NCBI GenBank assembly: GCA_965644495.1 | Contig: CBFFSA010000028.1 | Coordinates: forward strand, 1-64,000 | Direction of reading: 5' to 3' | Length of the DNA stretch: 64,000 nt | DNA from: Perkinsela sp. CCAP 1560/9 | Taxonomy: Eukaryota; Protista; Euglenozoa: Kinetoplastea | In this document: positions 28,759 to 61,436 of the stretch, in pieces | Position numbering within the stretch: the first letter of the stretch is position 1 | Layout of the letters: every line of letters begins with the position of its first letter | Notes under the pieces: model-generated | Databases searched by the model: none | What the model was told of the DNA's origin: nothing | The model's input: only the letters and a program-made list of their open reading frames with translations | Program-made: the position numbers and the translations under genes

Positions 28759-28763
28759 GTACA

Positions 28764-31700: not shown

Positions 31701-32430
31701 AATCCATATCTCTTCCGATTTTGTATAATGATGCGCCTAGGAATCGTGCCCAACAATATGCCAAAAACAGTCGTGTGCCCAGGATGCCTGTCAGAACATA
31801 CGTCCGACACGATATTTCAACATATACCTGGATGCACGCAATGCTGTGGAATCAATGCGACAAAGAAACACACAAGATTAGTTCGTTTCTTAGGAGAACT
31901 GTGTGCCAAAGCAGGGTTAGCTCACGTTGTAGAGCCAAGAGTACATTCATCATTCTTCTGCACTAAATGTAAGGCAACAGTCTCTGACGAGCTCTCCGAA
32001 AATCACCCATGCAGAGCCAGGTGCATACGCTCCGGTCCCGACCTAGGCATTATGTGGTCTCATGCAGGAGAAATTCTCTACGACGTCACCGTTGTTCACA
32101 GTTGTGCCCCTAGCTACACCAAGTCCTCCACAGAACAGTTAATGCAGAATGCTCTTGACCGTAAACACAAGAAATACGTCCTGCAAGGAGGAATTCCAGA
32201 AGAAAGTTTCAGCTGCTTGGCAATGACCGAATTAGGGCAGCTACACAAAAACACGAAAACCCTTTTGTCTCTATTGGCCCAACGATCACAACAAGACGTT
32301 AAAGTCGTGAAAGAAGCCTTCCAGCTCGAGATTGAGAAGATGAATGCATATACCATTGCAACGCAACTTCGAAAGTACGTTCCATCAGCACAATGGCTTG
32401 GCGGACTAAATCATTGATCGACTCTAGTAC

Positions 32431-32470: not shown

Positions 32471-32471
<1 letters not shown>

Positions 32472-34223
32472 CAGTCCGCAAGTGGTCGTAGCAATGCTCT
32501 ACTTGTTATTATTATTATTCTCATTTTATCCTAACACAAAGCTCGCTGCGACAACACTACCCACGCGACTCCATCCACTTTTCCTTCTCGTACCGCCTCT
32601 CTTCAACCTTCTCCTGATTGAAAATATGCTTTGCGAATTCCTCAAATTAAATTAAATATAATTTCATTAAAATTTTTGCCTATTGAAAATTACAATGCAT
32701 TAGGAACAATCATACACATGCCCATTTGACTAATCAAATAAATTGATTGATCTCACAGTAGTCAACGAACTTGAATTTGAGATTTTGATTCACTTTTTTT
32801 TTTATAAAGAAAATGAGTATGTTAAAAAAAAAATGAGTATGTGCCCATTCTCATCAACTCCTACGGCGTCACACACGATGCGCCTCATGTTGTTTACTTG
32901 TACTTCAACGTTTCTCACCTGCGATGCCGATATCACCATGGATGACGTACCGTAGTTTAGTATCCAATCCAATCCAAAAGACCGACATATGTCGGTTAGA
33001 ATGTTAAATGTTTTCCCCCCGAACTTATACTCCCTCGCCTTCCAATTCAGAGTTTAGTAGTGCCTACTATTTTACTTTCACACAATACTTTTCCTTTATC
33101 TTCCTGAACTCTTCCTCAGGGTATTCCGAACCTGCTGGTGGAAACACATCTTCCGCCCAACTCTTACTATGAAGGCGCCCTCTTTCCACCAGTTTTCGCA
33201 ATCTTCCCGCACAGCGTGACTTTAGCCTCGGCGCCACGCTTGGGTGCTGGATTGGTTTTCGTCTTTCCCTTTTCCAAGGTTCTATGTTTTATCAGCTTTT
33301 CCAAGGATTTGTCGATTTGTGATGCGTTGGAATCATTACTTGTTTTTCTCTTTTTCTGCTCAGGCGGTCGAGGAACTTTTCGCGCTGCAATCAGTGCTAA
33401 CCCATCTGCCTCGTCGTTCCATTTATTTCCTGAGTGACCCTTGACTTTGCACATATATATTGAGTACAAATCATGTTTTAAGGACCGTAATTTTCCGTCT
33501 AACTGGGAGAACAAATCTCCATTTAAAACTCCCTTGTAACCAACGATTCGCCGCCGATATCGAAGATTGTGAAAGAAGTCCCATAGATAGTAAGAGTCTG
33601 TATGAAACAGACAAGCGCATGGTTTTGACGGCAGTTGGAGAAGGGCATGCTGAAAAGCTAAGATCTCTACTCGCTCAATAGTGTCTGATTCCAATGGTAT
33701 GGATATCCGTGAGGGTTCGCATCGTGGTTTTAGAACTACGATACCTATGCCACTTCGAATCTCTTTCGTATTTTTCATCGGCAGAACAGAGCCATCGGTA
33801 TAGATTTGTATGGCTTTATAGGCTGGAAAAGGCACATTTGATTCTTCAACGAACTGTAATTCTGAAGGACTTTTTCGTTTTTTAGCTTTGGCAAGAGCAG
33901 TTTTCCACTTTGCTGACCCAATTTTTTCGTATTCTATGAGCGGTTCAAGTTCACGTCGCAATTTTTCTGTCAGACGATACCAGTGTTCACGGTCTGACGC
34001 AAATACCAATGCCTCTTCCAGTGTAATGTTAAGATCCTTGAAGCAAGCCTCGCTTGGAGATAAATTGCGTGCATTCGGGCGTTGTTTCCACTGTACAAGC
34101 TCTTGAAAATCACTGGAGTGCCTCAGCATGTGCCCTACGAGCTTGGCCCTCTGAACCTTGTGTATAGTAGAAAAGCGCTCAGTTTCAAGATACAGAGAAG
34201 CATTCGGGTAGCTCATTCCGTAT

Positions 34224-37200
34224 ATGTTGAATTGTTGGTTGTTGTTTTCCTATTCTTACTTTTCATGGGGATGTTTACCCGCAGCCGGGCGAAAGACACG
34301 GGAGTAGCTCCCGTCGTGCAGCCTCTGCCGCCGTCCCGCCGAAGGAAGAAACCGCCCGAGGAACGATCTCCAGTGGCACCGCCGTCGCCAACGTCGCCGC
34401 CGCCGCCGGCATCGCCGCCACCGCCAAGCGGTAGCCGCCAAGTCACTAATGCAACCCAAACGCCGCATCCCGCCGCCATCTCACCACATTCGCGACTGAC
34501 GTCACATCCCTTGGATGAATCGGTTCACGATCCGATCGCCTCCTCTATGCCACGTTTGTCATCGCCCTTGTCACCTCCTGAGTCACTGTCCAAGCCATCG
34601 GGACTTCCTCCACCACCCGATTCGCCGTCGCCCTCCCCTGGACGAAGCGCGTCAACTCTGTCTACAGGTTTTTCTACACGGCCGTCCTCACCTCAACGAC
34701 CTCCCTCGTCACCTCTTCCGGTAACACCGCCGGACTCCCCGAAAGCGAAACAAAAAACTGCTAAGTCGGAGTGTACAGTCAAAATTAAGAGTGCCATACT
34801 CTCTTCGGATTTCTTCAACCGTCGTCACAAAAAGCTAAATCTTGTCCAACATAGCATGCCACAAGACGACAGCCCAATAATTCGCCACCCACAGGGTTGC
34901 ATCAAGATGAAAAAAAACACAGCTAGAGAAACAGCTTTCACTAAGAGTAGCAAAGAACCGACCTACGCACAAGCAGCCACCCCTCCACCGAAAGAGCCCA
35001 CTACCCTTGACGAGCTCGTGTTAAGACCATTAAATCCATCGGCGGTAGCCAGAGACAATCTCCGCAAGAAAATTATGGAACTGCAAATATCCAACCAGAG
35101 AGGCAAAGAAAACGAAACTAGCGACAAGGAAAATTCAGAACACAGTGTAAGAGCACAAGCCATCGCACTGCACATGCACGGGGGTGATTCGAATAATAAC
35201 GAGCATATCATGCGCCTTGAAAAACTATACGGGGACTCAACGCCTGCGAAGCATACATCAGATAGTCAATCAGCATCACCAACACCATCCCCAGCTCAGG
35301 TTGAATTCCATGAATGCGAGTCTCCTACGCCCAAAGACTACACTCCCCAAGGACTACCCTCGCCACCTATTCCCGTAGACATTGAAGTCTCAAACGAAAG
35401 CAGATCTTCCATCATTTATTGTGAGAAGAGCGACAACGATACATATGTGGAAAACATCCTGAGCGCGATAAAACCAGAAGTGCAATTTCCACTTACATCT
35501 AAAGAAATAATTCAATCGTGCTCGAGTATCAAAAATGGAACAAACTGCACGATCGTTTGGACTTTCGACCGGCAAACCAAACTCAACATCTCTGAAGGAA
35601 CAGTAATGAAAATAAACAGTAGGGCCGGTAAAAAGAAAGTTACAATCCAATACAAAGGCGTTCGAGGACATCGCACTGGAGATACATTTGGTGGCTTTCT
35701 TCCACCACAAGAAAACATTCGAATCTATCAAATACAGTGGCATTGCACACCGATGGGCAAAGAGGCGGGCGAGCACGAAGAGGAGGGAGAACACGGAATA
35801 AACATGGAATCAACGCTTCACTCAAGCAATTGGGGTGAGGACGATGTTGATCATCTGCCCATTCCGACCGCCAAGACAATAAGCACAGATTACATTCCGA
35901 CAGTGATTGCAATATACCGCGATATCATGCAGACCTACGAAAGCAGCGACTATCCTCTAAGAAACAAAATCTGGAATAAAGTTCTTTCTGCCATGAAATT
36001 GTCCTTAGCCGCCGTACGACAGGCCAACGGCAGACGGAGACGACGACGACCGCTGACGCGTGATTCTATGAATCCTAATGGATCTGAAGAACACGAGGAA
36101 AAAGAACGCGAAGAAAAGGAAGATCTGCGAGCCATTAAAAAGGCCACGCGTCTTGCTCTAGAAGGTTGCGTTTCAAAGGCCACAAAGGTATTGGATCGTT
36201 CGTTCAACCGCAGCACCCTCACAGTTCAAGAAACAATGCAAAAATTACGGGAATTACATCCTGAACAATCTTGCGACTTTGCGGTCCCCGACGACGCCCC
36301 CATCATAGCAGCAATCTCCATCTACGAACTTCGAAGCGCTAGCAAGCGATTGGCCAAGGGAGTCAGTCCGGGACCCACAGGTACCACTGATAGCGTTATT
36401 AGGTTGCTCATTGACGATGAACCTTGTTGCAACAGTCTGTGCCACATGATGGGAGACCTTATCAACGGGTTTCTCTCGCGCCAAGTGATGCAGCGACTGA
36501 ATAGGGCTCGTCTCGTAGCAATTGCAAAGCCAGACGGTGGAGTTCGCCCCGTAGCTATCGGCGAAATTTTCGGCAAACTGGCGGGCTTAATACTTCTTCA
36601 AAGATATGAAAAAACGCTTGAGCCGTTATTCTCACCCATGCAACAGGGAGTCTTTTCGCAAGCCGGATGCGAGAGAATTGTACACAAGTTACGCGATCGC
36701 TACCTAGATGGACATACAATATTATCAGTTGATATGAAAAATGCATTTAATACACCATCCAGAAACGAACTGGCAAAAAGCGTTTTCGCTTTTGCAACCC
36801 TAAAACCCTTCCAAAGATTCTTCGCAGCAGAATACTCGGAGCCTTCCGATCTACTCTACTACGGGTCTGATGGGAATTTGGCTGGCATTATTCCGAGTTC
36901 GGCTGGTGTGAGACAGGGCTCTGCTCTGGCAAGTCTGTATTTCTGTGTCTTCTGCCAACCCATACTCGAAACGCTCGCTTCAGAATATCCCGCAGTAGAA
37001 ATAAACGCGTACATCGACGACATTACGCTTGTTTCTCGTGACCCTTCCAATCTGGAGAAGGCGTTCTTCAGATTAAAAGACCTGTTGAAAGATAAACGAG
37101 TACTATTAGCTGAATCAAAATGCGTGTGGTATCAAGGAACTTCAGATCATGGAATCCCAATGGCCCTCCACGAACAGGGAGTCAAGACAGAGACGGAGGC

Positions 37201-38723
37201 CATAAAAATACTGGGAGCTCATATCGGCGACAACGAAACGGTCAGTGAACGTCTGCTTCGGCAAATTAGCAAATACGAAACCGGGTTTCGGCGACTAAAG
37301 AAAATGGGAATAAACAACATCTCCCTGTTGTTGTTATCCAAATGCGTAAACGTTAGGCTACAGTATTTGATGAGGGTGCATGAAGCGAATGCAACGGATA
37401 AAGCATCCTTGCAGTTCGACCACCAGGTTGAAAGTATTGTGGAAGCTTGGGTGGGATCCCTTTCCTCGTCACAGAAGAAAATTATGCGCTTACCAGTCAA
37501 AAAGGGAGGTTTCGGTTTAACGGCGTACAATCCTCATCGTGAGAATGCTTATGCGGCCTCGCGCTTTTCGGTTCTTGAGCACCAAAGTTCATCTTCAGTT
37601 CGGACCGACAAAGACATGGCAACCGCACACCCTTGCATTCCGAAAGCAACTAACCTAAAAATTACACCAGTTGACAACCAGACAGCCAACGCAATTCACC
37701 ACGATGAAGCTCTGAAAGAGTTGCAACAAGACCCTGAACTCAAACTAATCTTGCAAGCGAACTCATTTAAAGGCAATAACGACTGGCTTCTGTCACACGC
37801 CCGATACATACCGTCTCATCTGTTCAAGCTTGCCATTATGCCCAGACTTAATGCTCACCATCAAGACCTTCCCTCAAGCCTTCTATGCCCCGGATGCAGT
37901 ATGATACTGAATAATCGAAGCGCTCTTTTTCATATCTCAGGCTGCTCCCAATGCTCCGGATTTAACACAACGATGAAACACAATTCGCTCGTAACCTTTA
38001 TACAACGTCTTTGCCACAAAGCGGGTTTACCCTGCGAAAAAGAGCCCAGAGCTTTCTCTTCCTGGAAATGTCTGACATGCGGAATTAGCATTAACCCAGA
38101 AAATCGATCAACGCACCAGAAAGTATGCGCTGGAAGGCGTCTATGCCGCTCTGGTCCGGACCTGGTCATTTACTGGAATACTGGCGAAGTCTTTTATGAC
38201 CTTACGGTCATACACGAGCTCTCAGTCACGAATCGCTCCAAAAAGTGCACCCAACTAATGAACGAAGCTATCAAAAAGAAAATCAACACATACGTTAAAA
38301 CCGAACTCATAAGGGAGGAATGCTTCGAGTGTCTGCCAGTGTTGTCCGGGGGTGCTCTCCACCGAAACACTCAAAGACTAATCCAAGTTCTAGCTGATGC
38401 AGCAGGAATTGATCGTCAACTGGCGGAATTGGATTTCAAGCTTTTGGTGCAGGAGTTGAACGGTATCGAAGTATACTCTCAACTTCGAAAATATCTTGAT
38501 GGAAACCGTGACACTCTAGAATTTAGTTTATAATAGATAAAAGACAACATTTCAACTTCCCGCTTTATTGTGGGAGATTACTCCAGAGATTATCGTTACT
38601 TATAATAAAAAGAAAGGTATCCTATTGATGAAGAAAGATATAAAAAATGTATTATTTCGAACGGATGCGTTTCAATGTACCGATTTGCATCGGTTAAGAA
38701 CAAAAAAAAAAAGCATTTCTTTG
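34224..38723 (+). mobile_element. Full-length lineage-2 RLE element (family 2B) inserted antisense into I2
   Basis: Absent from the duplicate locus (~63185); GTAT repeated at 34220-34223 and 38724-38727; short poly(A) 38702-38712. Confidence 0.9.
34265..38533 (+). CDS. Pro-rich region - RT - Zn knuckle - RLE polyprotein
   Basis: MGMFTRSRAK start; RPVAIGE, DMKNAFN, RQGSALA, YIDD; CPGC; RSGPD..YD..K. Confidence 0.92.
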   Translation: MGMFTRSRAKDTGVAPVVQPLPPSRRRKKPPEERSPVAPPSPTSPPPPASPPPPSGSRQVTNATQTPHPAAISPHSRLTSHPLDESVHDPIASSMPRLSSPLSPPESLSKPSGLPPPPDSPSPSPGRSASTLSTGFSTRPSSPQRPPSSPLPVTPPDSPKAKQKTAKSECTVKIKSAILSSDFFNRRHKKLNLVQHSMPQDDSPIIRHPQGCIKMKKNTARETAFTKSSKEPTYAQAATPPPKEPTTLDELVLRPLNPSAVARDNLRKKIMELQISNQRGKENETSDKENSEHSVRAQAIALHMHGGDSNNNEHIMRLEKLYGDSTPAKHTSDSQSASPTPSPAQVEFHECESPTPKDYTPQGLPSPPIPVDIEVSNESRSSIIYCEKSDNDTYVENILSAIKPEVQFPLTSKEIIQSCSSIKNGTNCTIVWTFDRQTKLNISEGTVMKINSRAGKKKVTIQYKGVRGHRTGDTFGGFLPPQENIRIYQIQWHCTPMGKEAGEHEEEGEHGINMESTLHSSNWGEDDVDHLPIPTAKTISTDYIPTVIAIYRDIMQTYESSDYPLRNKIWNKVLSAMKLSLAAVRQANGRRRRRRPLTRDSMNPNGSEEHEEKEREEKEDLRAIKKATRLALEGCVSKATKVLDRSFNRSTLTVQETMQKLRELHPEQSCDFAVPDDAPIIAAISIYELRSASKRLAKGVSPGPTGTTDSVIRLLIDDEPCCNSLCHMMGDLINGFLSRQVMQRLNRARLVAIAKPDGGVRPVAIGEIFGKLAGLILLQRYEKTLEPLFSPMQQGVFSQAGCERIVHKLRDRYLDGHTILSVDMKNAFNTPSRNELAKSVFAFATLKPFQRFFAAEYSEPSDLLYYGSDGNLAGIIPSSAGVRQGSALASLYFCVFCQPILETLASEYPAVEINAYIDDITLVSRDPSNLEKAFFRLKDLLKDKRVLLAESKCVWYQGTSDHGIPMALHEQGVKTETEAIKILGAHIGDNETVSERLLRQISKYETGFRRLKKMGINNISLLLLSKCVNVRLQYLMRVHEANATDKASLQFDHQVESIVEAWVGSLSSSQKKIMRLPVKKGGFGLTAYNPHRENAYAASRFSVLEHQSSSSVRTDKDMATAHPCIPKATNLKITPVDNQTANAIHHDEALKELQQDPELKLILQANSFKGNNDWLLSHARYIPSHLFKLAIMPRLNAHHQDLPSSLLCPGCSMILNNRSALFHISGCSQCSGFNTTMKHNSLVTFIQRLCHKAGLPCEKEPRAFSSWKCLTCGISINPENRSTHQKVCAGRRLCRSGPDLVIYWNTGEVFYDLTVIHELSVTNRSKKCTQLMNEAIKKKINTYVKTELIREECFECLPVLSGGALHRNTQRLIQVLADAAGIDRQLAELDFKLLVQELNGIEVYSQLRKYLDGNRDTLEFSL

Positions 38724-39520
38724 GTATTCATCTAATCTGTTGCATTGGCAAACTATTCTTCTCATGTTGTTAACTTCAACGTCAATTCTTCGGAGCATGG
38801 ATTTTGAAATAGAAAGTGCACCTGTCCCAAAGTTTAGCACCGGATATACTATTGAATCGTAGAGGCGCAGCTTAGTCTCCGGGCTAAGTGGTGAAGACCA
38901 AATACCATTCATTCGAAAGAGAGATCCCCAAGCTAGTTTCAATCGATCTTTAACTGTAGATGTAAAATCATTTTCCTGCCGATGCCCTAAGTGTTTGTAA
39001 GACGTAACTTTCGGAATCATCCCCGAGAATTTGCTGTTCAGGCTCTCGCCGCTCATTTGAGATTTACCAAAAGTTAACCAGGCTGTCTTGTTTGCTCCGA
39101 CGGCTAGTTTCAGATTAGCTTTGCGTGACTCTTCAGCTACATTGTCTATCATATTTGTCAAACCACTCTTCGTGTCACTAAATAACGCTATATCGTCCGC
39201 ATACTCAATGTCACTCAGGCGCTTTTCATGAAGACCCCGCTTTCTTGTACCCCTAGAGCTGAGAAGAACCCCGTCTGATTTTCCATCTAGTGCTTTATTG
39301 AGAATTCTATCTAACACCATAACGAACAGATAAGGCGCCAATACATCACCTTGAAGTATTCCTGTAGTGATAGGGAAAGGTTTCGTGATTCCAATAGAAG
39401 TTCGTACAGTGCCTTTCAGCTCATCGTATATAGACATTATCATCTTAGAAAGACATGGACCTACTCGAAATGCATGCAAACTAGCTTTAATAGCAGCGAA
39501 CGATACCGAAGGAAATGCTT

Positions 39521-40519
39521 ATCAACATGAAATGTTTTTCAACATGAAAAGGATTGGAAAGAATTGCTTCTAAATCCCGAACTTAAGCCCATACTTCAAG
39601 CCACTTCTTTCAAAGGCAACAACGACTGGCTCACGTCACATGTACGAAGTATACCGTCACACCTATTTAAGCTTGCGGTTATGCCTAGGCTAAATGCTCA
39701 ACATCAAAATCTTCCGACCAACCTTCTTTGCCCGGGATGTGGCATTGTTCTCGACAATCGGAATGCTCTGTCACATATCCCAGGATGCGTTCAATGCTCA
39801 GGATTCAATTCAACGGCGAAGCACAATGCACTTGTTACATTTCTACAGCGACTATGCCACAAAGCTGGATTGCCATGTGAAAAGGAACCCAGAGCTTTCT
39901 CGTCATGGAAATGTCTGCAGTGCGGAGATATAATTAGTCCAAGCAATCACGTAACTCATCAGAAAGTTTGCACTGGAAGACGGCTATGCCGATCCGGACC
40001 GGATCTCGTTATTTATTGGAACAACGGCGAGGTATACTATGACTTAACCGTAATACACGAGCTTTCGCAGAGCAATAGGTCTAAAAAATGCATCCAACTA
40101 ATCAACGACGCGATCAAAAGAAAACACAACACGTACGTGCAGACGAATATTATACGAGAAGAATGCTTCCAATGCTTGCCTGTTCTGTCCGGAGGTTCTT
40201 TACATCGCAACACGCAAAGTCTGATCCATGCGATAGCAGATGCCGCCTTACTAGACCGGCAGGGGGTTGAACAGGAATTTAAACTACTGGTGCAGGAATT
40301 AAATGGTCTAGAAGTTTATTCCCACCTTCGGAAATACCTAAACGAAGAAGGCGCTACGCAGGAATTCAGTCTATAAATCAGCTCATTGGTTTTTATATCA
40401 TAATACGAAATATTACACAGCTTGCAAAGTCGCGCAAGCCTTATATAAGCCTTATCTCTGATCCGTCATTGTGGAAGAATGCAATGACAGGGGTCTTACA
40501 AAAAAAAAAAAAAAAAAAA
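39521..40519 (+). mobile_element. 5'-truncated family-2B-like element (Zn knuckle, RLE, 3' UTR, poly(A))
   Basis: ORF 39564..40376 is similar to the C-terminus of 34265; poly(A) 40500-40521 abuts an SL. Confidence 0.88.
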
Positions 40520-40595
40520 AACGATAAAGATACAGTTTCTGTACCTTGTTGAATTATTTTTATTAACCCACTATTTTCCCTAGCAGGGTCTCACC

Positions 40596-43500
40596 ATGCC
40601 ACACGACGACCTCTTCGATGCGAATGCAGTACCCATGGACGACGACTCTTTCCGTCAGGAAGAAATTTCGCACAACACGGGTGCTTGGGACCAATTTGCA
40701 GGAAACGCACATTTAATTCCCGGTCAGAGCTCCTACGATGAACTCTTGTACACAACACCGATTCCCAAACATATCCCCAAACACTGGGCAAAAAGAGCCG
40801 CCAAGATCGCCGGAGAGGCTCCCACGCCGGACACGGGAAGAATGACGGAAGATGAAGAGACGAATCACTCCCTCGTCGTGGAAGCAAGCCCGAGAAACAC
40901 ACCGGAGGTTCCTGACGCCCAAGTACCTTCTCCAAACAAGGCCTCGAAGCGCAAGAACATAAATCCGGTACCGATCCCGCAGCACTGTACTCAGCGCGTA
41001 TGCCCAGCTGAAGGATGCACTTGGAAGACTCCTCCTCACGGTGGGCAATGGCAAGCATTTTACAATCATGTGGCCCACCGACACGGAGAAAGCGTACCAA
41101 CCACTTGGTGGGAGGGGGAGGGAAGATTTCTTTGCAAGGACTGCTGCAGGCACTACGATAAGAACAAGGAGAATTCTCACCCCAAACAGTGCAAAGGCCG
41201 TAACCACCCCGTGCGATCTCAAACCCCACCTAGGCCAACGACAAGTCTCGAAAATGCAACTGAAATTCCTCCAGAAAACATGCTACCAACGTTGAGCTCT
41301 ATCTGCGCGCTGCCCATAAGCACATGCAAAGATGTCCCCCATTCCTGTAGGTTTCTATGGGCGAGCATTTTGACACAGGTCATGACATCTGCTGTGCAAG
41401 AAAACACAGTGGAGGCATGGACGTTACTGGCAATGCTCCCTAAATGCGTCTTACCTGCACCTTACCGAGGCGGTCGCAAAGGACACACGTCATACTCTAC
41501 ATACGTGGAAAAAAGCATGGAACTCTGGCTAGAAGGGGAGTACCTCTTGCTCTGGGAACAGGCCCTAAAGGATCACGCCAAAAAACGCTCCAAGCCTAGA
41601 AGTTCCGAAAATGAAGAAGAAAGAGCGGCAATCAGGGCAGAAATACTGTCACGTCAAGGGGAATACTCTAGGGGAATAGCCGCTCTAACCGCAGCACCCA
41701 TGGCGCCGGACAACGAGGAGACCCTTGCGAAGCTTCTAGAAAAGCACCCAAATCCTCACGAAAACCCACTTGAGAACGATCTTCCACCGATTGAGGGTAA
41801 TCCCCTGCGTCTGGAGGAAGTGGAAGTCAGGAAAGCGGTCGAAAGTTTTCGCAGAGGGTCTTCTGCCGGAACAATGGGTCTACGTCCAGAACACATCCAG
41901 GCCGCCATTTTGGAACACGCCAACAAGAAGGTGGGTCCTCTTTCGTCCCTCACTCGCCTCGTGAACCACATGCTCCAAGGAAAGGCACCGCCAGAGGTAC
42001 AACTGTTCTACGCTGGAGCCCGTCTCTGCGCTCTGGAGAAAGGTGAAGAAGATGTCCGACCCATAGCAGCAGGCGAAACCCTCAGACGTCTAGTAAGCAA
42101 AGCGGCATGCGTCGCCGTAAAGGAGAAGGCTGAAACTTTATTCCGGGGAAGACAGTATGGTGTGACTGCATCCGCGGGGGCCGAACGAGTAATTCATCTG
42201 TGCCGGAAAACAATGCTAAACAACATGGGGAGCGACAGTCTTGTTCTCTGTAAGGTAGACCTCAGAAATGCGTTCAACAACGTCAGCAGACCTGTCTTCA
42301 CTTTGCTCACACGTCTCAATTTTCCAGAACTTTCACCCTGGGTGGAATGGTGCTACACAAACCCGAGTTGTCTTACCTACGGGAATCACTTCCTATCCTC
42401 AGCCGAAGGCGTCCAGCAAGGTGACCCATTGGGTCCGCTTCTCTTCTCTCTAGTCCTTTCTGGGGTAACCGAGGAAATATCATCCCGATCAAACCTAGAT
42501 TCGCAACTATGGTATTTGGACGACGGAGTTCTCATGGGGGAGGCGGCGGAGGTTCGAAAGGCGCTTGATGTTTTTTCCGAGGTTGGTTCACAATGCGGGC
42601 TATTTCTGAATCCGAACAAGTGTGAAATAATAACGCCACCTGCCTCAGCCCATCACACGACTTTATTTCCGGAAATACCTACCGCCAAAATTCGTGTTGA
42701 CGGGAATTTCGATATTCTCGGATCCCCGATTGGGTCTGCGGAGCACTGCGCGGAGTTCCTAATGTCTCACGCCATCGAACCCGCACGCGAGACTCTCGCA
42801 GCAATAGGGCTAATAGGCGATCCACAAGTTGCCATCGCCCTCATCCGCCAGTGCACTGGCTTCTGCCAAATGGTGTACGCTCTCCGCACCACACCCCCCC
42901 AGGCTCTTTTTCAACTTTGTAGCCTACTAGACGAAACCGTTCTTAAAGCTGTCGAGTGGGCACTTTTCCCCCTGGAACCCCACGCACGTGACCAAATCCA
43001 ACGAAGGAAACGCCACGGAGGTTTCGGCCTTAGGTCTGCAACACTCCACGCGACAGCCGCTTACGTTTCTTCCGTCGCGCACGCCGCCGACATAGACGAC
43101 TGGGATCCTACAGAGGCTGATGGATTCGCCATTTCGGTACAAGACGTAAACCGTAAAGCAGGAGTAGCGCTAGTGGATCCCAACACGGGGCGCACACCCA
43201 AGCAGGACAAGCCACTCCCATACTCAGGCCACCATCACAACTTCCTCCCGAAAAGGAAACGCCCACGGAGCACTCAAAACAAAATGGAAGCGGACAGGGC
43301 AACCGCGCCGGAGATGGTCATCCCTCGACAGCAGCAACTCAGCCAGGCTATCTCACAGCAGGAATTCACCACAGCATACGAGCAGGCTGACCCTCGCACT
43401 CGCGCACGGTGGGTTTCAGAGTCGGGTAAGGGAGCAGGTAGCTGGGCTTTCGTGACGCCCTCTAGGAGCAAAGGATACGCCTTCACACCAACAGAGTTCC

Positions 43501-44174
43501 GCACGCTGTCCCGCTGGTGGCTGGGATCCGACATCTATCAAGAAGATCGCCCTTGCCCAGCGAAGGGATGCATATTACCTCTGCAGAAAAATGGGGAACA
43601 TGCATTGTTATGTAAGAACGGACATGGCCTCATCACCCGTCACAACGCGGTCTGTGAGCAATTCACAGCATTCTGCAGAAAAGCCGACATAGCTCCGCAA
43701 AGGGAGAAAAGCCTGGGAAATCGTGGTCCAAGAGGGGGTCTCACCAGACCTGCTGACGTGTTTCTCCCGAATTACACCCTGGGAAGTGGTATGGTGTTAG
43801 ACTTCGCAGTCACCCACGCACAGCAACTAAAGTATTTGGACTCTGTCCGGAATGCTAGCTGGGTGGCTGCGGGATCTTTCGCTGAACACTACTCAGCAAC
43901 GAAGGATAAACAACGCCAGGAAGCGGAGGAAGCGAAATTACTTTTTACGGCCATGGTAGTTGAATCCTTTGGCTCGTGGAGTAAAAGCGCGATGGCTGTT
44001 TTGTGGAAGGTGGGGGCGTTACGCGCAAACGCGTCAAACGGTCTACTCACAGACACTCAAGCCCGAAATGACCTTCTCAAAGAGCTGAACGTGGCTCTCA
44101 TGCGCTCCCAGGCCCGGATGATGGTCTCTAGGATAGTCGTCAGTGACCCTGACGCTCCCCTGGAAGGGGCCTAA
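40596..44174 (+). CDS. LsmAD-like domain - zinc fingers - RT - CCHC - RLE polyprotein (1192 aa)
   Basis: WDQFAGN..YDELLYTT; CPAEGC..H..H; QQGDPLGP, YLDD; RHN, RPADV, DFAV. Confidence 0.93.
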   Translation: MPHDDLFDANAVPMDDDSFRQEEISHNTGAWDQFAGNAHLIPGQSSYDELLYTTPIPKHIPKHWAKRAAKIAGEAPTPDTGRMTEDEETNHSLVVEASPRNTPEVPDAQVPSPNKASKRKNINPVPIPQHCTQRVCPAEGCTWKTPPHGGQWQAFYNHVAHRHGESVPTTWWEGEGRFLCKDCCRHYDKNKENSHPKQCKGRNHPVRSQTPPRPTTSLENATEIPPENMLPTLSSICALPISTCKDVPHSCRFLWASILTQVMTSAVQENTVEAWTLLAMLPKCVLPAPYRGGRKGHTSYSTYVEKSMELWLEGEYLLLWEQALKDHAKKRSKPRSSENEEERAAIRAEILSRQGEYSRGIAALTAAPMAPDNEETLAKLLEKHPNPHENPLENDLPPIEGNPLRLEEVEVRKAVESFRRGSSAGTMGLRPEHIQAAILEHANKKVGPLSSLTRLVNHMLQGKAPPEVQLFYAGARLCALEKGEEDVRPIAAGETLRRLVSKAACVAVKEKAETLFRGRQYGVTASAGAERVIHLCRKTMLNNMGSDSLVLCKVDLRNAFNNVSRPVFTLLTRLNFPELSPWVEWCYTNPSCLTYGNHFLSSAEGVQQGDPLGPLLFSLVLSGVTEEISSRSNLDSQLWYLDDGVLMGEAAEVRKALDVFSEVGSQCGLFLNPNKCEIITPPASAHHTTLFPEIPTAKIRVDGNFDILGSPIGSAEHCAEFLMSHAIEPARETLAAIGLIGDPQVAIALIRQCTGFCQMVYALRTTPPQALFQLCSLLDETVLKAVEWALFPLEPHARDQIQRRKRHGGFGLRSATLHATAAYVSSVAHAADIDDWDPTEADGFAISVQDVNRKAGVALVDPNTGRTPKQDKPLPYSGHHHNFLPKRKRPRSTQNKMEADRATAPEMVIPRQQQLSQAISQQEFTTAYEQADPRTRARWVSESGKGAGSWAFVTPSRSKGYAFTPTEFRTLSRWWLGSDIYQEDRPCPAKGCILPLQKNGEHALLCKNGHGLITRHNAVCEQFTAFCRKADIAPQREKSLGNRGPRGGLTRPADVFLPNYTLGSGMVLDFAVTHAQQLKYLDSVRNASWVAAGSFAEHYSATKDKQRQEAEEAKLLFTAMVVESFGSWSKSAMAVLWKVGALRANASNGLLTDTQARNDLLKELNVALMRSQARMMVSRIVVSDPDAPLEGA

Positions 44175-44588
44175 GGGATCTCGGGAATACCCACTGGGAC
44201 ATAAACCGCTGGTCCGGATGCTGGTCGGTGCCGACAGGGTCTATGCTCACGCCTAGTCTGTCAGGGCTAGGTACCCCAAGTGAGGTAGGACAAGGGTAGG
44301 GAACTTTGTTCCTCCCCGTCGGCCAGCATCATGCTCCGCGACCGTGCCGCTGTCGGCACAGGCCCATTGCTTGCGCCCTCTCGTACAACAAGAGAAGGGT
44401 TAACAAGGCAAGCTGGGAGTGGTCGAAAGACCCGGTTCGGAACATGCATGAGGAAGATGGGAGCGCGAATGGATTGGAGAAGACCTCGCCTCCCCCCTTC
44501 TTTATCATCAAAAACCCTCTTGTGGCGTAGGTGCGAGGCGAGGCAGAGGGAGACCTTACCCTCCCTGGAAAGGTGGAAGTTCGGTAAG

Positions 44589-44652
44589 GGGAAGTGGGAA
44601 AGTTGGGAAGTGGGAAAGTTGGGAAGTGGGAAGGTTGGGAAGTGGGAAAGTT
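44589..44652 (+). repeat. Four copies of the 16-mer GGGAAGTGGGAAAGTT in the 3' UTR of 1B
   Basis: Direct reading; eight GGG runs. Confidence 0.85.
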
Positions 44653-44920
44653 GGTTTGCTAGTTTTTATATAGTTGTTAAAAAGAGGAAAAAGATTTAAA
44701 TAAAGAAAAAAAAAAAAAAAAATACATCTCCCCCAACCCCCCACAGAACGGACGAGTTCTGTAACCATACGCGATCACAGACACTGAAATGAGTTAGACT
44801 GTGGGTATTAGGGTGCCTTCGGTCCAGCCCAACAGCTGCATACACTATGATTACGATACTAGACTCAGCGATTGGACGAACTAGCGAATAGGGAGGCAAA
44901 AAAAAAAAAAAAAAAAAAAA

Positions 44921-45037
44921 AAATAATTTGATTGCTTGTTTACAAATCATATACCCCCCCCAATGGACCTTCATGGTTCATGTATTGGGTAATATAGAGG
45001 CAATGCCGCGTTTCATACTTCTCCCCCCTTATTAATC

Positions 45038-45073
<36 letters not shown>

Positions 45074-45464
45074 CTGTTTCGCGACCGTGTCGCTGTCGAC
45101 ACAGGCCCGCGCCTGCGCCCTCCCATATAACAAGGGAAGGGTTCACAAGTCAGGCCGTGGAGAGGTCGAAAGACCCGGTCCGGAACGCGCGAATGGATTG
45201 GGCATGGATTGCTTGTTTTAATTTTTACTGTTTTTCTTGTTTGTAGTATATACTTAGGGGAGACTAAATTGCTAGTTTTGGGCTGAGAAAAAAGGTACAT
45301 CTGTGGACAGAAAAAGAATTGCTAATTTGATTGTTTGTTTTCAATTCGTATACCCCCCCCCCCAATGGACCTACTTGGTTCGTCTACTGGGTCAAAATAT
45401 AGAGGCAATGCCGCGATTCATACTTCTCCCCCCTTATTAATTGCAAAAAAAAAAAAAAAAAAAA
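44921..45464 (+). mobile_element. Two tandem poly(A)-tailed 3'-end fragments of lineage 1A
   Basis: 44921-45070 and 45071-45464 match the 3' UTRs at ~20195-20340 and ~49918-50200. Confidence 0.85.
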
Positions 45465-48400
45465 CTTTAACGATAAAGATACAGTTTCTGTACCTTGTTG
45501 AATTATTTTCTTTTTCTTTGTCTACTCTCTTTTTGATGGTGATGAACGAGACACACCCAGACAACCATCCTGAGGACACACCTTTCGACCCTGGAATCAT
45601 GGATTCTAATCAGAATTCTGTCCACGAAGAAAAATCCCATGAATTGGGTAGTTGGGACCAGTTTAAGGGCAACGAACATCTTATCCGAGGCGCAAGCACC
45701 TATGACGAGAGTTTGTACACTACTGCCATCCCGCAGAATATCCCGCACGATTGGATGCGCCGTGCGCACGCTTTAGAAAAGGATATTGAAACGCCCGACA
45801 TGGGTCACGTACATGACCGAACTGAAGAGGAGATCCATTGTAGTGTCCAGCGTGATATCGATAAGTCTAATAATGTTGATTTCGAAGGAGCTGATTCGAT
45901 TCCACACAGCCAACTAAGCACATTTAGCAAGGCTGCGAAGATGACCGATGAGTGCTCTAATGTCAATCCTGACGGAACCGATTCGACTTCACTCAGCCAA
46001 TTAAGCACATCTAGCAAGGCTGTGAAGACCACTGATGAGGGTCCTAATGTCAACTTCGAGGGAACTGATGCGACTTCACCCAGCCAATTGAGAAAATCTA
46101 ATAAAGCTGTGAAGGCGAGATTTTTACGACACCTTCGAAACTCAGAACACTCTAAGAACTGTTACGAATCCGAAAACAGTACGGCCACGTTCCCAGACCT
46201 CACTCCGACGGACCTCGTTTCTCATTTCTCCGTTTCTAGCAGTCTAAAGAGGCGCAAGAACAAGAAGTGCTCTAAAAGAAATATTACCTCACAGACATCT
46301 TTGAACCAATCAGGCTCCGAAAGCACAGTAGCGACAGAGTCGGGTAGCGACGGAGTCTCCGTTGAACCGGTATCATCACAAGACAGCTGCGTCACATCGG
46401 AAGTAAAGCTTAAGCGGAACCGAGCCACTTTCAAATCCGAGCCTGTTAAATCACCTAACCTCACGCGGAAGACAAAAACATCATATAACGCTAGAAAGTG
46501 CCCAGTGGAATCATGTTTATGGCAAACCGGTCCTCATGGAAATCAATGGCAGGCGTATTATAATCACGTCTCAAACAGGCACGGGGCGGAAGTAACGGAC
46601 ACGTGGTGGGCAGAGGAAGGAAGATTTCGATGTGCATACTGCAAAAAACATTACCACTTAGGCAAAAAGGAGTCCCATACGCGACATTGCAAATTTCGCA
46701 CACACTCATCCGATAACCCTCAGGATCCTTCCCGTGAGGTGAACGACTCCCCGAACCCTACCACAAACGCCGCTGTGATGCCTGAACACCCCCCCGGTAC
46801 GAACCCTAATGATCAGCCCGATCAGATGGAGGATGTTGACAACTTGCTGCCGACCTTATCTTCTGTGTGCACACTTCCGGTGATTACGAGCAAGGATATC
46901 CCTTATTGCTGCAGGGCTGAATGGGCACGAGTACTCACTTCCTGCTTGATGGCAGCCACGCTAGATAATACACTCGAGGCGTGGACTCTCCTTGCGATGC
47001 TTCCGAAATGTGTCCTTCCGGCCCCCCGCCGTGGAGGCAGTAAGAACAAAACCTCTTATGCGTCCTACGTCCGAAAATGTCTTTCCAGATGGAACCAAAA
47101 GGAGTACATACCCCTCTGGAGTGAAGCAATCGCCAGTCTACAGCGCAAACGCAAATCCCCGGCGCAAGCAACCAGCGTAGAAGAAAATGACGACAAGGCA
47201 GCTCTACGAGCGGCTAGGCTTGCCCGAGATGGAGAGCTATCGCGTGCCATGACAGCACTGACCTCGGAGCCACTCGCTCCCCATGACGATGCCATCTACA
47301 ATAAACTCATAAACAAGCACCCTCCACGACTCTCTGGCGAAGACCCAGGCGAACAACTTCCTTCATCGTCCGTAACCCCTCTCAAGATCACACAGGAAAA
47401 TGTAACCGAGGCACTCTCAAGTTTCCACAGAGGATCCTCCGGAGGGGCGTTCGGCCTTCGGCCAGAACATGTGCAGATAGCCATGGCATATCACAACGAT
47501 GAGCGCATAGATCCATTGGGAACGCTCACCAAGTTCGTTAACCATCTTCTTTCCGGAGGCGCGATGGACGAGGTCCAGCCGCACTTCGCTGGCGGACGCT
47601 TATGTGCACTTCATAAGGGAGCACACGATGTTCGGCCCATCGCCGCAGGAGAAACCCTCCGGCGTCTCGCAAGCAAGGTTGCGTGCTTTTCTGTCAAACC
47701 AAAGGCCTGTCGGCTCTTCAGAGGACATCAGTACGGGGTTGCAATACCCGCTGGAGCCGAGAGGGTAATACATTTATGCAGATTGACCATGGCGGAACAC
47801 GTTGATGACGAGGACTTCGTCTTATGTAAAGTTGATCTCCGAAATGCGTTCAACCACGTATCACGCAACAGCTTTATTTCGCTCACCCGTCAATATTTTC
47901 CTGAGCTTAGTCCCTATGTCGAATGGTGTTACTCTTCAGACAGCCGCCTAACATTCGGAGATCGAACGGTCACCTCTTCTGAAGGAGTTCAGCAGGGAGA
48001 CCCACTAGGCCCTCTTTTATTTTCTCTCGTCGCGAAGGAACTATTTACGGAAATCAAGAAGGCAGCCCCAAGGCTTGACTTAAACATGTGGTTCTTGGAC
48101 GATGGGGTTCTGTCAGGCAAATCTTCAGACGTCAGGCACGCACTTGACGTCATTGCAGTCGAAGGTCCCAAGTGGGGCTTACATCTCAATGTTGCTAAAT
48201 GTGAACTCATTACGAATCCAGCTGCCTCTGACCGATTTGCTCTTTTCCCGGACATTCCTGGTTTGAACAAAAACACAGACGGCAATCTTGACATCTTGGG
48301 AAGCCCTATTGGATCTACAAGCTTTTGTCACCGATACCTATTGGAAAATCCAATCAGTCTCGCTGAGGACTCACTAACGGCAATACAAAAGTTGGATGAC

Positions 48401-50217
48401 CCTCAAGTGGCCCTATCGCTCATTCGTCATTGCACAGGATTTTGCAAAATGGTGTATGCTCTACGCACGACACCTACCGCGGAGCTACAAGACCTTTGCG
48501 AACGCCTGGACCGAGCAGTCCAAAACACGACGGAGCGCTTTATCGGTCCTTTGGGTGAATCGGCTCGACGACAGGCACAACGAGACAAACGACACGGAGG
48601 ATTAGGGCTGAGGTCCGCTGCAACACACGCCACGTCAGCATACGTATCTTCTGTAGCCTTTGCGTCTGCAAATGACCGTTGGGACCCCACGCAAGCTGAG
48701 AGTTTTGAATTCGCAGTACGGGACGTCAATAGGCGCGCGGGCTATAACTTCGTTTCAAATACAGGGAGAATTCCAAAACCTTCGTCTTCCCCACCTGAAC
48801 AGTTGAACCCAGAAACAGCAAACTCCGACGATATCATCCCGGACGAAAGAATCCTAGAAGTTTTGCACCCCGACGACGCAGACCCTGAATCCTCTCGCCC
48901 CGTACTAGTAATCCCGCGACAACGAGAATTAAGCCAGGCGATTTCAGCATCCCAATACTTGGCAGACTATAAAAACGCAGATGACAAAACCAGAGCCCGA
49001 TGGGTATCCCAAACGGGAGAAGGGGCATCGGAGTGGGCCTTTGTGATTCCATCGAAGACCAGTGGTTTCGCTTTCACTTCCGCCGAGTTTCGTACTCTGA
49101 CGCGATGGTGGCTAGGGGAAAAAATTTACCCCAAGGCAAGACCCTGCCCCATGGACAAATGTGGGCTTCCGCTAGGCCCTGAGGGGGACCATGCACTTTC
49201 CTGCAAGAGTGGGCATGGTATCATCGCTCGCCACAACGCTCTTGCCAGACAGTTTGCCCGAGACTGCACAAATGCCGGGCTTACAACGAAGCGGGAAGTA
49301 AGCCTGCATAACACGGGCCCTGGCGGCGGTCTGACGCGACCGGCGGACGTATTTATCTCAAGTTTTCGAGCGGGTCAGGGCCTTGTAATGGATTTCGCTG
49401 TCACACACGTCCAGCAAACAAAATATACGGATCTAGTCCGTGATGCTAGCGTGGTTTCAGCTGGATCCTTTGCGGAAAGATACGCAACGGAACACAAGCA
49501 GAAACAACGGGAAGAAGCCGCCGCAGCCAAACTCCGATTTGCGGCCATGGCCGTAGAATCATACGGCTCATGGTGCCCCAGCGCTATGGCTGTGATCCGT
49601 GACGTGGCAATTGAGCACTCAATGCACTCCGGTAAACTATCCAAAAAAGAAGCCTTACATCGACTTCTTGCTGGCTTGAACGTCACTTTAATGCGGTCGC
49701 AGGCACGTATGATGGTGCTACGATCCTCACCGACACCTGACCCAGCCCTGATAGGCTATGGCGATATGGAAGTAGTGTAGTTCCATCCTCTTTTGCATCC
49801 TCTGGTCCGGATGTTGGTCGTGTCGACAGAGTCTATACTCACGCCTAGCCCGCGAGGGCTAGGTACCCCAAGTGAGGTAGTACACGGGTAGTGAATCTCC
49901 TCCCCGTCGGCCAGCATCCTGTTTCGTGACCGTGTCTCTGTCGACACAGGCCCGCGCCTGCGCCCTCCCGTATAGCAAGGGAAGGGTTCACAAGTCAGGC
50001 CGTGGAGAGGTCGAAAGACCCGGTCCGGAACGCGCGAATGGATTGGGCATGGATTGCTTGTTTTAATTTTTACTGTTTTTCTTGTTTGTAGTATATACTT
50101 AGGGGAGACTAAATTGCTAGTTTTGGGCTGAGAAAAAAGGTACATCTGTGGACAGAAAAAGAATTGCTAATTTGATTGTTCGTTTTCAACTCGTATACCC
50201 CCCCAATAAAAAAAAAA
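45465..50217 (+). mobile_element. Full-length lineage 1A element, copy 2, with SL (45465-45500)
   Basis: Nearly identical to 15516-20340 across the ORF; distal 3' UTR differs. Confidence 0.93.
45536..49780 (+). CDS. LsmAD-like domain - zinc fingers - RT - CCHC - RLE polyprotein
   Basis: Same motifs as 15590..19834, with few amino-acid differences. Confidence 0.93.
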   Translation: MVMNETHPDNHPEDTPFDPGIMDSNQNSVHEEKSHELGSWDQFKGNEHLIRGASTYDESLYTTAIPQNIPHDWMRRAHALEKDIETPDMGHVHDRTEEEIHCSVQRDIDKSNNVDFEGADSIPHSQLSTFSKAAKMTDECSNVNPDGTDSTSLSQLSTSSKAVKTTDEGPNVNFEGTDATSPSQLRKSNKAVKARFLRHLRNSEHSKNCYESENSTATFPDLTPTDLVSHFSVSSSLKRRKNKKCSKRNITSQTSLNQSGSESTVATESGSDGVSVEPVSSQDSCVTSEVKLKRNRATFKSEPVKSPNLTRKTKTSYNARKCPVESCLWQTGPHGNQWQAYYNHVSNRHGAEVTDTWWAEEGRFRCAYCKKHYHLGKKESHTRHCKFRTHSSDNPQDPSREVNDSPNPTTNAAVMPEHPPGTNPNDQPDQMEDVDNLLPTLSSVCTLPVITSKDIPYCCRAEWARVLTSCLMAATLDNTLEAWTLLAMLPKCVLPAPRRGGSKNKTSYASYVRKCLSRWNQKEYIPLWSEAIASLQRKRKSPAQATSVEENDDKAALRAARLARDGELSRAMTALTSEPLAPHDDAIYNKLINKHPPRLSGEDPGEQLPSSSVTPLKITQENVTEALSSFHRGSSGGAFGLRPEHVQIAMAYHNDERIDPLGTLTKFVNHLLSGGAMDEVQPHFAGGRLCALHKGAHDVRPIAAGETLRRLASKVACFSVKPKACRLFRGHQYGVAIPAGAERVIHLCRLTMAEHVDDEDFVLCKVDLRNAFNHVSRNSFISLTRQYFPELSPYVEWCYSSDSRLTFGDRTVTSSEGVQQGDPLGPLLFSLVAKELFTEIKKAAPRLDLNMWFLDDGVLSGKSSDVRHALDVIAVEGPKWGLHLNVAKCELITNPAASDRFALFPDIPGLNKNTDGNLDILGSPIGSTSFCHRYLLENPISLAEDSLTAIQKLDDPQVALSLIRHCTGFCKMVYALRTTPTAELQDLCERLDRAVQNTTERFIGPLGESARRQAQRDKRHGGLGLRSAATHATSAYVSSVAFASANDRWDPTQAESFEFAVRDVNRRAGYNFVSNTGRIPKPSSSPPEQLNPETANSDDIIPDERILEVLHPDDADPESSRPVLVIPRQRELSQAISASQYLADYKNADDKTRARWVSQTGEGASEWAFVIPSKTSGFAFTSAEFRTLTRWWLGEKIYPKARPCPMDKCGLPLGPEGDHALSCKSGHGIIARHNALARQFARDCTNAGLTTKREVSLHNTGPGGGLTRPADVFISSFRAGQGLVMDFAVTHVQQTKYTDLVRDASVVSAGSFAERYATEHKQKQREEAAAAKLRFAAMAVESYGSWCPSAMAVIRDVAIEHSMHSGKLSKKEALHRLLAGLNVTLMRSQARMMVLRSSPTPDPALIGYGDMEVV

Positions 50218-52129
50218 CTTATTTATATAGAATCATCAGAAAAAAAAAAAAAAAAAAGGGGGGCGGACGAGTCAGTCGGTAGCGAGTAATTGGGTTACTG
50301 ACACGTGCTCGGGTATGAATTACGCGACGTGACGTGTGCTCGGGTTGGTTGGCTGCGAGCTGAGGGGATGGGTCTTCCCGTTCACAAGTTACTTTGATTA
50401 TGGAATTCCGGAATATTGTTTCAAACTGTGCTGATGTGATGAGACTTGTACTCTTTGAGAAACTGATCTACATGTATGACGATTTCAATGAATTTTCGTT
50501 ATGTTCTATTTCCAGTTATATTTCTTCTTAATATATCTTTTCATATTCTTTGTTAATGTACGTGAAAGCACGAACTGGATTTCTAAAAGTTTACGGATTG
50601 AAATTCAGGAGGGATTATATTTGAATAGGGTTTGTTAATAATTATGTACGTGTATGAACTGTATGCATTTTCGCGTGAAATTGATTTTATTCTTATGTGA
50701 CTGTATTAGTGACTATTCTATTTGGGTAAAGCTTCACTCGTAAAAAAAAAAAAAAAAAAAAAAAAAAACGTATTCACGAAATCTACACCTACAACAAGAA
50801 GCCTCATCCGTCGCAGAAACATTTACTTTGCAAGGGAGCCAAAACCGTCTGAACATCAGGTCGTGATAAATCAGCGCACCACACAGTCACCAATGAACAC
50901 CACTAAATGCTTTAGCAAAGTCTATAAAAGCTACAGAAAGGCCTTGTCCTCTGAATGCTTTGGTTTTTATTTCGTTCATGATAATCTGAGCTCCAGAAGT
51001 CGCTCGGTTAGGTCGAAACCCATACTGGTTACCCCGAAGAGACTTTTCAATGTTGGGTCTAATGCTGGAGAGTATCATATGATTCATGAGCTTAACTACG
51101 CTATTTACTACGCATATAGGCCGCCAATTCTCAATGTTAGTGAGGTCTCCTTTCTTTGGGATGGGTATTTGAAGAGTGTTGCGCCAGGCTTCCTCTGTGA
51201 CTCCCGTTTCGTGTACCTGGTTGATTATATTCAGGAGATGCGATCTCAGATCAGGGTGGACCGCTATAGCTTGAAGGGCTTCCATTGGTATTCCGTCACT
51301 TCCCGGTGTTTTTCCTCCTCTGAAATGTTCTAGAGATGTGCTTAACTCCTCGCTTGTAAATGCTGCATCGGATATTGGTACTAACAGCGGCGGCAGCAGT
51401 TCAAAGCTAAGATTTGGATCTCCATCATCAGCGCCACTAAATTTCATGAAGTACGATCGAATTTCGTTAAGTTTATCATTTCGTGAGCTTCCGTTCGTGC
51501 TAAAGGTATCACGATATTGCCCGCATATCTTTCGAATCGTTCTCCATGGGTTTGAATGGTTTTTACGAAGCTGTTTTTCAATCTCCAAGCATTCGTCAGA
51601 AATAATCTCTTCAACTTCCCCTTTATTCTCCTTTACGAGGGCGTTGAACACCTTTTTGTTTCTGCTCTTGTGATATAAACCGCGCAAATCATGTATTTTT
51701 GAGTCCTTTACAGCTTCTTTGTTCAAATTTCGTTTCGTCGGTTTTTTGAAAGTTTTTACAGCATTTTTCATATATTGTGCGAGAGCGCCCCATGATCGAC
51801 CAGAGTTCGAAGTTGCTCGATATTGGTCGTGAACTTTATTGATGAAATTCTTCCTATCCTCACTATTTCGAAGAGAAATCCACGAGAGCTGATTCGTATT
51901 CGTTTTGGGATCACTGACTCGCCATTTAATTTTAATTCTGGCTATAACACAACAGTGAGTAGTAGGAATGGGTGCCTTGATCACTTTGTGTCGTTGAACT
52001 GCCGATGCAAATCTGCTACAAATAAATATGTGATCTAACTGCCTTAAAGCTTTGTTTGGTAATTCGCATGTCCATTTCCGACTGCTTGGACAAAGACTGT
52101 GCGCAGACTTACAGTCTATAGAACAAGAG

Positions 52130-54567: not shown

Positions 54568-54701
54568 TCGATGAATATTCATCGAACGCACTGTCCGTTC
54601 GATGAATATTCATCGAACAGGACATCATGTTCGATGAATGGATTGCAGTACGACCCGTTCGATGAATCATTCATCGAACAGGATGTCCTGTTCGATGAAT
54701 G
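54568..54701. repeat. Short array of the palindrome GTTCGATGAATATTCATCGAAC, period ~30-32 bp
   Basis: About five full or half units; the unit at 54597-54618 is a perfect 22-bp palindrome. Confidence 0.85.
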
Positions 54702-55662
54702 AAAACGCAATTTTTTTTTGTAAAAAAAAAAGCTCGTTTCGGTCTGCATCATGCTCCTGGCTGCTACCTTGATCCGTAAGACAAAAACAAATCCGAAACG
54801 TTATCAAAAAGCGGAAGGATAATAGTTTACGAGATGAAATTTAGGCGAGGGCTATTTACGTTTAATAACCTGGCCCTTCGGGGCACATAAATATATGAAC
54901 TTATGATATGGCCCTTCGGGGCACATGTATTATTAGTTTCTTCTTTCTCATATTCTTCAGTTTATGACTTTCAAACATCAACATATTTAGTAGACTTTAT
55001 TTCCTTTTTGTAGCTGTACTGCGAGCTTCGAGGCCCACCCACCAACCCCCAGCCTCGGCTGCGGGGTGTGGGGGGCTGAGCCCCTTCACTTCGTACTACT
55101 AGTATTAAATATTTAGGTTATAGCGCGCAAGGCCTTTTTTCAAGATAAAATCATAACTTACAAATACACAAACCTGCGGAAGTGGCAGACACAGGTCCTC
55201 ATTGCGCGAGCCAAAAAATATTGGGTTGGGGTTACGTTCGTTGTACTCAACGAACTGCCGGATTTTCGTTGAGTACTCAACGAACGGAAATTTACGGTGC
55301 AAGTCAAGGACTTTTGCATATGTCAAGGACTTTTGTGGAACACCCAAGAATTTTTTTTGAATTTCATTTTCCGTGCGTTCAGTATCCTACACTTCACTAT
55401 ATACGTTGACAACGCCTGCGTAGCGAAAACTACGAAATTCAGTGAGCTTCGCAAATTGCTTCCCACTAACGACGCACAGGGGAATCCTACGCGGGGTACG
55501 GCTCAGGCCCGCTCACGCGGGCCCTCGCCGTTTCGCGGCCGCGCGCACCCCCGCTCACGCGGGGGCCCCCGCGCGGCCAAAATGGGTACTAAAATTTGTT
55601 ATCAAGGTAGTTGGGCTTCGCAAATTGCTTCCCACGAATCTAGAGAGAAGCACACGTACAAT

Positions 55663-55701
55663 AATCTTTAACGATAAAGATACAGTTTCTGTACCTTGTT
55701 G
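55663..55701 (+). other. Full 39-nt spliced leader, followed by an extra CTTGTTG
   Basis: Identical to 15516-15554. Confidence 0.9.
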
Positions 55702-55740
55702 CTTGTTGACTTTTTCTTTACTACTACTTTAACCTCTTTT

Positions 55741-61399: not shown

Positions 61400-61436
<37 letters not shown>
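59679..61436 (+). mobile_element. Displaced 3' half of family 2A copy 2
   Basis: Essentially identical to ~30710-32470; ORF remnant 59692..61386. Confidence 0.9.

Follow-up and report, generated by a model that had tools for sequence, protein, structure and literature searches.

An 11.4-kb train of same-strand, RNA-derived pieces inside one target-site duplication of a Perkinsela retroelement: probable template switching at most of its joints

How does a retroelement come to hold eight pieces of different origin, all on one strand, within a single short target-site duplication (TSD)? The question is raised by the window analysed here, the first 64 kb of contig C28 in the genome of Perkinsela sp. 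CCAP 1560/9 (21 Mb in 110 contigs). The window opens with a 10-bp repeat that runs for 3.5 kb; the remainder consists of nested retroelements. The repeat (1-3483) is a telomere-like array of the unit TCTTTCTTCC, unlike TTAGGG, the usual telomere unit of trypanosomes. Four levels of nesting are present on the minus strand at 27501-54175: a family-2 element and element I2 (12-bp TSD) split element I1, while element 2A and the train split I2. Part of this nested stack is duplicated at 55687-63321. I2 (32964-52129, minus strand), the host interrupted by the train, is a 5'-truncated, ingi-like RT-RNase H element nested in I1. A second long-read assembly of the same organism, ENA ERZ24900291, was the source of longer loci.

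The outer boundaries of the train show the short TSD and empty site of a single insertion made through target-primed reverse transcription. The 8-bp duplication AAATGCTT is present at 39513-39520 and 50905-50912, while five empty paralogues (C5, C8, C22, C24 and C27; 99-100% identity) carry a single copy: their match to the left flank ends at 39520, the match to the right flank starts at 50905, and the two flanks overlap by exactly 8 nt. The same empty junction is found at the target in three short-read samples. Excision of the insert in silico gives an open I2 RT frame that includes DFAKAFPS. Both the duplication and the restored frame had been described in an earlier note made from this sequence alone, and both are borne out. 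No poly(A) stands beside the 3' TSD, which is adjoined by a tail-less 136-nt piece. Assembly ERZ24900291 (locus L096) contains an identical 22.6 kb with 0 substitutions and 8 one-base homopolymer differences; it was probably made from the same sample as the window, and hence, while it counts against an error of scaffolding, it adds no second biological observation. In four other samples, the short-read contigs do not span the train joints, nor do they rule them out; the 1A alleles differ there. Only the empty target is seen in other samples, whose contigs cannot bridge repeats.

The 11.4-kb interval holds eight pieces on the plus strand, connected by seven joints. At the 5' junction lies a 17-nt patchwork filler (39521-39537), which echoes the element's own truncated end and a target motif and is missing in a close paralogue (L093). 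The leftmost piece, 2B (39538-40499), is a 5'-truncated family-2 RLE-type element comprising the C-terminal zinc-knuckle and nuclease region and the 3' UTR; it is 98-99% identical to other copies, which have only A6 where the train has A22. This A22 and nt 7-38 of a spliced leader (SL) occupy 40500-40551 and are followed by the CRE-like element 1B (40552-44722), with an intact 1192-aa ORF (40596-44174) and early tailing at an internal A5, which is A17 here. Next come an unassigned 175-nt fragment with A26 (44723-44923), whose three other genomic copies all sit behind an A-run and are never followed by one; a 116-nt CRE-family 3' end with A31 (44924-45070), which matches at least 10 loci at 100% and shares neither junction with any locus among the matches scored; and a 374-nt stretch with A20 (45071-45464), recognized by sequence match as another CRE-family 3' end. 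A complete 38-nt SL (45463-45500), its first two A's merged into the preceding tail, heads the CRE-like element 1A (45501-50217), which has an intact 1414-aa ORF (45536-49780) and terminates with A10, some 110 nt early. After it comes a VIPER-like split-direct-repeat element, represented by its 3' part (50218-50768; B1 at 50342-50583 and A2 at 50584-50741), ending in A27. Finally, a 136-nt low-copy fragment without poly(A) (50769-50904) would have been the first template at the primer end; it is found at only two other genomic places (97% and 92%), its first 23 nt are unmatched, and there is a 1-nt overlap, an A, with its source.

All identifiable pieces are RNA-derived and share one orientation, as the earlier note had stated for the RLE pieces. 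Its description of A-tailed pieces throughout is correct for most of them, but the 3'-most piece is tail-less, the A-run at 50240 came down from the source element, and that at 50208 coincides with an A-run of this source. Likewise, 1B and 1A are both SL-headed, tailed and intact in their ORFs, yet both fall short of their native 3' ends. No host mRNA retrocopies, which the same note had thought worth seeking, were identified in the train; the two unassigned pieces could not be placed or map within or close to clusters of elements. Neither the window nor the 175-nt and 136-nt fragments gave an Rfam match. None of the seven joints recurs at other loci among the matches scored, which means that the train does not duplicate another locus in the assembly. 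One possibility considered was that the 116-nt piece belongs to 1B as its native 3' end, the 175-nt piece having inserted between them; it is not supported, since the native 1B end has a different version of this module and 19 extra bases. Direct precursors in the form of empty joints between the 2B tail and the last piece, or the 2B tail and the 175-nt piece, were sought and not found; for a precursor joining a 1A-type end and tail to the VIPER-like piece, only an unrelated case on C11 was found. Elsewhere in the window, at 15515-15516, a tail-less 3'-truncated family-2 element abuts an SL-headed 1A, and the remainder of that element was not found downstream.

Elements 1A and 1B each have a single ORF with an RVT_1 match and the motifs QQGDP, YLDDG and RPAD..D. 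Their proteins are closest to CRE/SLACS, with 30-31% identity to the SLACS-labelled P0061 of Diplonema. Judged by sequence, 1A and 1B are members of the CRE clade that are not inserted at a fixed position of the SL RNA gene. The clade (SLACS/CRE) targets SL genes in trypanosomatids (PMC12278014). SLACS, CZAR, CRE1 and CRE2 likewise have a single ORF, an RT and RLE, a poly(A) tail and SL at the head (PMC12278014); in contrast to them, 1A and 1B are dispersed, lack a fixed SL-gene site and lie nearly always behind an A-run. The VIPER-like piece at 50218-50741 is the B1-A2 section of an element with split direct repeats, A1...B1-A2-B2, which is the VIPER/TATE layout (PMC12278014). Its source copies contain a zf-CCHC (Gag-like zinc knuckle) and weak RVT_1/RT_RNaseH matches; no tyrosine recombinase ORF was detected in the source parts examined, which lie outside the middle of the element. 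Genomic sources run on as TTTCG and are tail-less where the train has A27. Hence, this tail was added on the RNA, and the piece was copied in trans. The run at 50208 lies where the source has an A-run of its own, and the run at 50240 is inherited from the source, with A18 here versus A7-8 there.

Given that a tail-less first piece abuts the TSD, at least one template jump is required. Three simple family-2 insertions in the window have the order TSD, element, tail, non-A piece, TSD: 57646-59678 (7-bp TSD, 76-nt piece), 34224-38723 (4 bp, 11 nt) and 28751-32841 (9-10 bp, 8 nt). The 76-nt case has three empty sites, and the relatives of its fragment have 3 nt in common with the beginning of the TSD. 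Since all three insertions start alike, the enzyme often primes on a bystander RNA and then moves to a tailed RNA. Where a long A-run is followed by another piece, that piece is sense or SL-headed in about 40 cases and truly antisense in 1. At four of the seven train joints the donor carries A's at the break, which suggests that a T-ended cDNA pairs with the next tail from these donor-side A's. Such A/T pairing would agree with the microhomology step reported for R2 (PMC13586686). The earlier note had proposed that one RT chained several RNAs, from the 5' cap end of each to the next poly(A). A jump is indeed needed and most joints favour chaining, but the structure stops short of a single event, and pairing at A-runs, not only a cap-to-tail step, seems to be the glue.

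The SL joints were examined throughout the genome. A tandem gene at C1:661319, which, going by kinetoplastid leaders, we take to be the SL RNA gene, contains an exon of 38 nt that begins AACT and an intron with GTATGAG as its first bases. The genome has 352 occurrences of the leader core, 8 of them with the intron. In the train, poly(A) adjoins an SL at 40520 and at 45463-45465, as had been noticed before; measured against the true gene, the SL is joined at nt 7-9 in the first case and at nt 1-3 (a complete leader) in the second, which replaces the earlier estimate of about nt 8 and nt 4. Among 42 listed tail-to-SL places, the leader is present from nt 3 onward in 28 (13 with altered first bases), starts at nt 4-5 in 4 and starts at nt 7-9 in 10. 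The nt 7-9 start is common to four of five near-identical 1B copies, each with different neighbours; thus, the 5' end of 1B is inherited and not a fresh cap. The earlier note had also envisaged self-extending subtelomeric arrays. This is not supported: simple 10-bp repeats form the contig end (3.5 kb), the train is internal and TSD-bounded, and tail-to-SL joints are also found deep inside Mb-size contigs.

The main rival to joining by template switching is stepwise growth, a third route that the earlier note had overlooked: 2B, its tail and the 136-nt piece would have inserted first with the 8-bp TSD (one jump), after which CRE-like proteins priming on T-tracts would have filled the tails one at a time with their own and with bystander RNAs, leaving TSDs that are all A. 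Later insertion of this kind into A-runs, whose A's conceal the TSD, has been observed directly in this genome. A VIPER-like copy on C11 (L076, about 228000-229000) contains CRE 3' fragments of 229 nt and 392 nt inside two internal A-runs that are empty in the VIPER-like copies on C1, C17 and C23, and the C11 duplications are all-A and invisible. Hence, missing internal TSDs do not prove one event. The earlier statement that the train has no internal TSDs stands in so far as none of at least 4 nt is visible at any of the six internal pieces, but all-A TSDs occur in the genome and 1A has CTT after the A-run on both sides, a 3-nt TSD candidate. With this and its short right-hand tail, 1A is the likeliest later fill. 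At L009, L091 and L095 the duplication extends 6-8 nt beyond the A-run, where about 0.5 such cases are expected by chance. Heads start in an A-run in all five 1B copies and in 23 of 25 long family-1 heads versus none of five true family-2 heads, a family split that is biased, as loci L031-L060 were picked for tail-to-SL joints and two short elements received a neighbour's label. In addition, every internal piece has A-runs on both sides, so that all of them can be lifted out cleanly, leaving 2B, tail and last piece, the layout of the three simple insertions. Against stepwise growth stand the tails. The right-hand runs of proven or likely fills measure 8-16 A (n = 7, two weak), those of the six internal pieces 17, 26, 31, 20, 10 and 27 A (p = 0.011), and the tails of the 18-piece train L097 average 24 A (p = 0.0009 versus fills), with the caveat that A-runs alter in length, as the run at 50240 demonstrates. 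In simulations, six fills on a tail of 10-31 A gave at most 127 A, whereas the train has 153 A in seven runs; 0-2 fills fitted best, and four or more poorly. Furthermore, six young VIPER-like copies have about eight long A-runs that are still empty, neighbouring family-2 tails are empty too, and the train's flanks are identical to those of the empty paralogues, so six separate fills would need a much higher local rate. No TSD of at least 4 nt is visible among 18 adjacent pieces of L097 either. Visible TSDs occur at 5 of 81 pieces, which an all-stepwise model fits if the targets were 40-60 A long. On balance, purely stepwise growth is possible but unlikely.

The pieces might also have been joined as RNA, either in a read-through transcript of a source train missing from the assembly or by ligation before reverse transcription. 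A kinetoplastid would transcribe trains as read-through RNA, trains are common, and inherited composites do exist (1B with its short SL start, and the A-run at 50240). For U6/L1, ligation of RNAs ahead of reverse transcription has been shown (PMC6789731). Nevertheless, the seven joints are found at no other locus among the matches scored, and a poly(A) 3'-OH would be unsuited to RtcB-type ligation, which requires a cyclic or 3' phosphate (PMC8051266). We consider pre-joined RNA improbable. The proposal of the earlier note that incoming elements target the SL of resident copies has the sequence grouping of 1A and 1B with SLACS/CRE, and the SL-gene preference of that clade (PMC12278014), in its favour. 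It is already largely refuted, and highly improbable: the joined SL position varies across the 42 places, only one joint lies near nt 13-15, a partial test that misses long tails found no tail-leader-intron joint, the pieces preceding either SL in the train have no SL copy upstream of them, and five of the seven train joints have no leader. An assembly chimera joined at homopolymers would account for joints that are A-runs, and the second assembly probably shares the sample. It is barely credible, however, against an exact 8-bp TSD with five empty paralogues, the same path in that second long-read assembly and two intact ORFs. The structure of the train is real.

Tail lengths, unique junctions and the capture of a VIPER-like RNA favour template switching for most joints. 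We conclude that most joints are probably template switches made in one or two integration events, with none to two later fills. An RLE-type protein would have nicked I2 and primed on the tail-less bystander RNA fragment at the right end, a start that the structure displays. The RT would then have passed from RNA to RNA during target-primed reverse transcription via A/T pairing at A-runs, so that five to eight templates were joined over one or two events, and later priming in a new A-run, with the TSD hidden, may have added as many as two of the pieces, 1A being the likeliest. Against this reading, the leftmost piece belongs to family 2, like the simple core insertions, and this would suit a core that was filled later. 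That the whole 11.4 kb is one cDNA, made by a single RT chaining all eight RNAs, two full-length elements and a VIPER-like RNA among them, with serial jumping as the normal way in which CRE-like insertions are completed here, is a stronger proposition that we regard as doubtful.

Template jumping of the R2 type is well known in vitro and is used for library preparation and gene insertion. As here, an RLE-type non-LTR RT is involved; short homology lets the cDNA end pair with a new RNA at its 3' end, and synthesis starts without long homology. R2 jumping was shown in vitro and the element is rDNA-specific, whereas we have a genomic product only, with at most eight templates over 11.4 kb, elements (CRE-like and family 2) that are not site-specific, and joints that are mostly A-runs. 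L1 and Alu insert into older A-tails. Priming on T-tracts by these elements (PMC3649969) resembles the present case in that poly(A) pairs with a T-tract primer, copies lie head to tail and TSDs are largely A; it differs in using an APE-type L1 where we see CRE-like 3' ends, and it would explain some pieces, but the long tails fit poorly. Chimeric U6/LINE-1 retrocopies (PMC4476161; bioRxiv 10.1101/2025.02.02.635956; PMC6789731) also place same-orientation RNAs in one TSD, through template switching or RNA ligation. They have two parts with the LINE at the 3' end and involve APE enzymes; the train has many parts with their own tails, closes at the 3' end with a bystander that lacks a tail, and involves RLE enzymes. 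The telomeric arrays of Drosophila HeT-A/TART/TAHRE and Giardia GilM/GilT (PMC10088271) are likewise polarised and made of poly(A)-ended elements, unlike the train in that it is TSD-bounded inside an element, 36 kb from the simple-repeat end, with tails pointing away.

In the literature searched, natural template-jump products are two-part chimeras, and within that incomplete coverage neither multi-part trains nor SL-headed, dispersed, A-run-associated CRE elements turned up. Jumps per event could be counted in vivo in a genome that offers many multi-part trains together with empty paralogues and measurable tails, and the one-cDNA reading, if true, would yield a genome-wide record of multi-template reverse transcription in vivo. 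The two routes, jumping and the filling of old tails, can be distinguished by alleles and a simple assay. CRE-clade elements here have moved away from the SL genes to positions behind poly(A) runs. Unrelated RNAs, such as a VIPER-like transcript and an SL intron, gain a route into the genome. The intron is at L091:7420-7488 (ENA ctg3930l), where the entire SL RNA intron (98.6% identity to the SL gene) with A7 lies inside a 23-kb same-strand train; it is a non-element RNA captured in a train.

Several smaller observations were made along the way. At L097:1-4300 (ENA ctg3139l), about 17 short A-tailed fragments, CRE 3' UTRs or unassigned, lie in a row, with tails of 10-41 A and many tailing sites. 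A TSD suspected at C8:784284 against the edge of a VIPER A-run was discarded, there being no such copy on C8. Imperfect palindromic repeats at 54568-54702 and 55232-55289 lie upstream of an SL-headed family-2 element. At L009, L030, L094:3760-3830 and L101:12560-12650, stuttered partial leaders precede the SL and leader 3' ends are repeated after it, the extra joints not falling after AG. It should also be noted that a repeated 570-nt non-coding unit, found at 8263-8838 (minus strand), L003 and L014, has at its head an SL-like sequence followed by GTA, resembling the SL gene, and is possibly an SL-derived short element.
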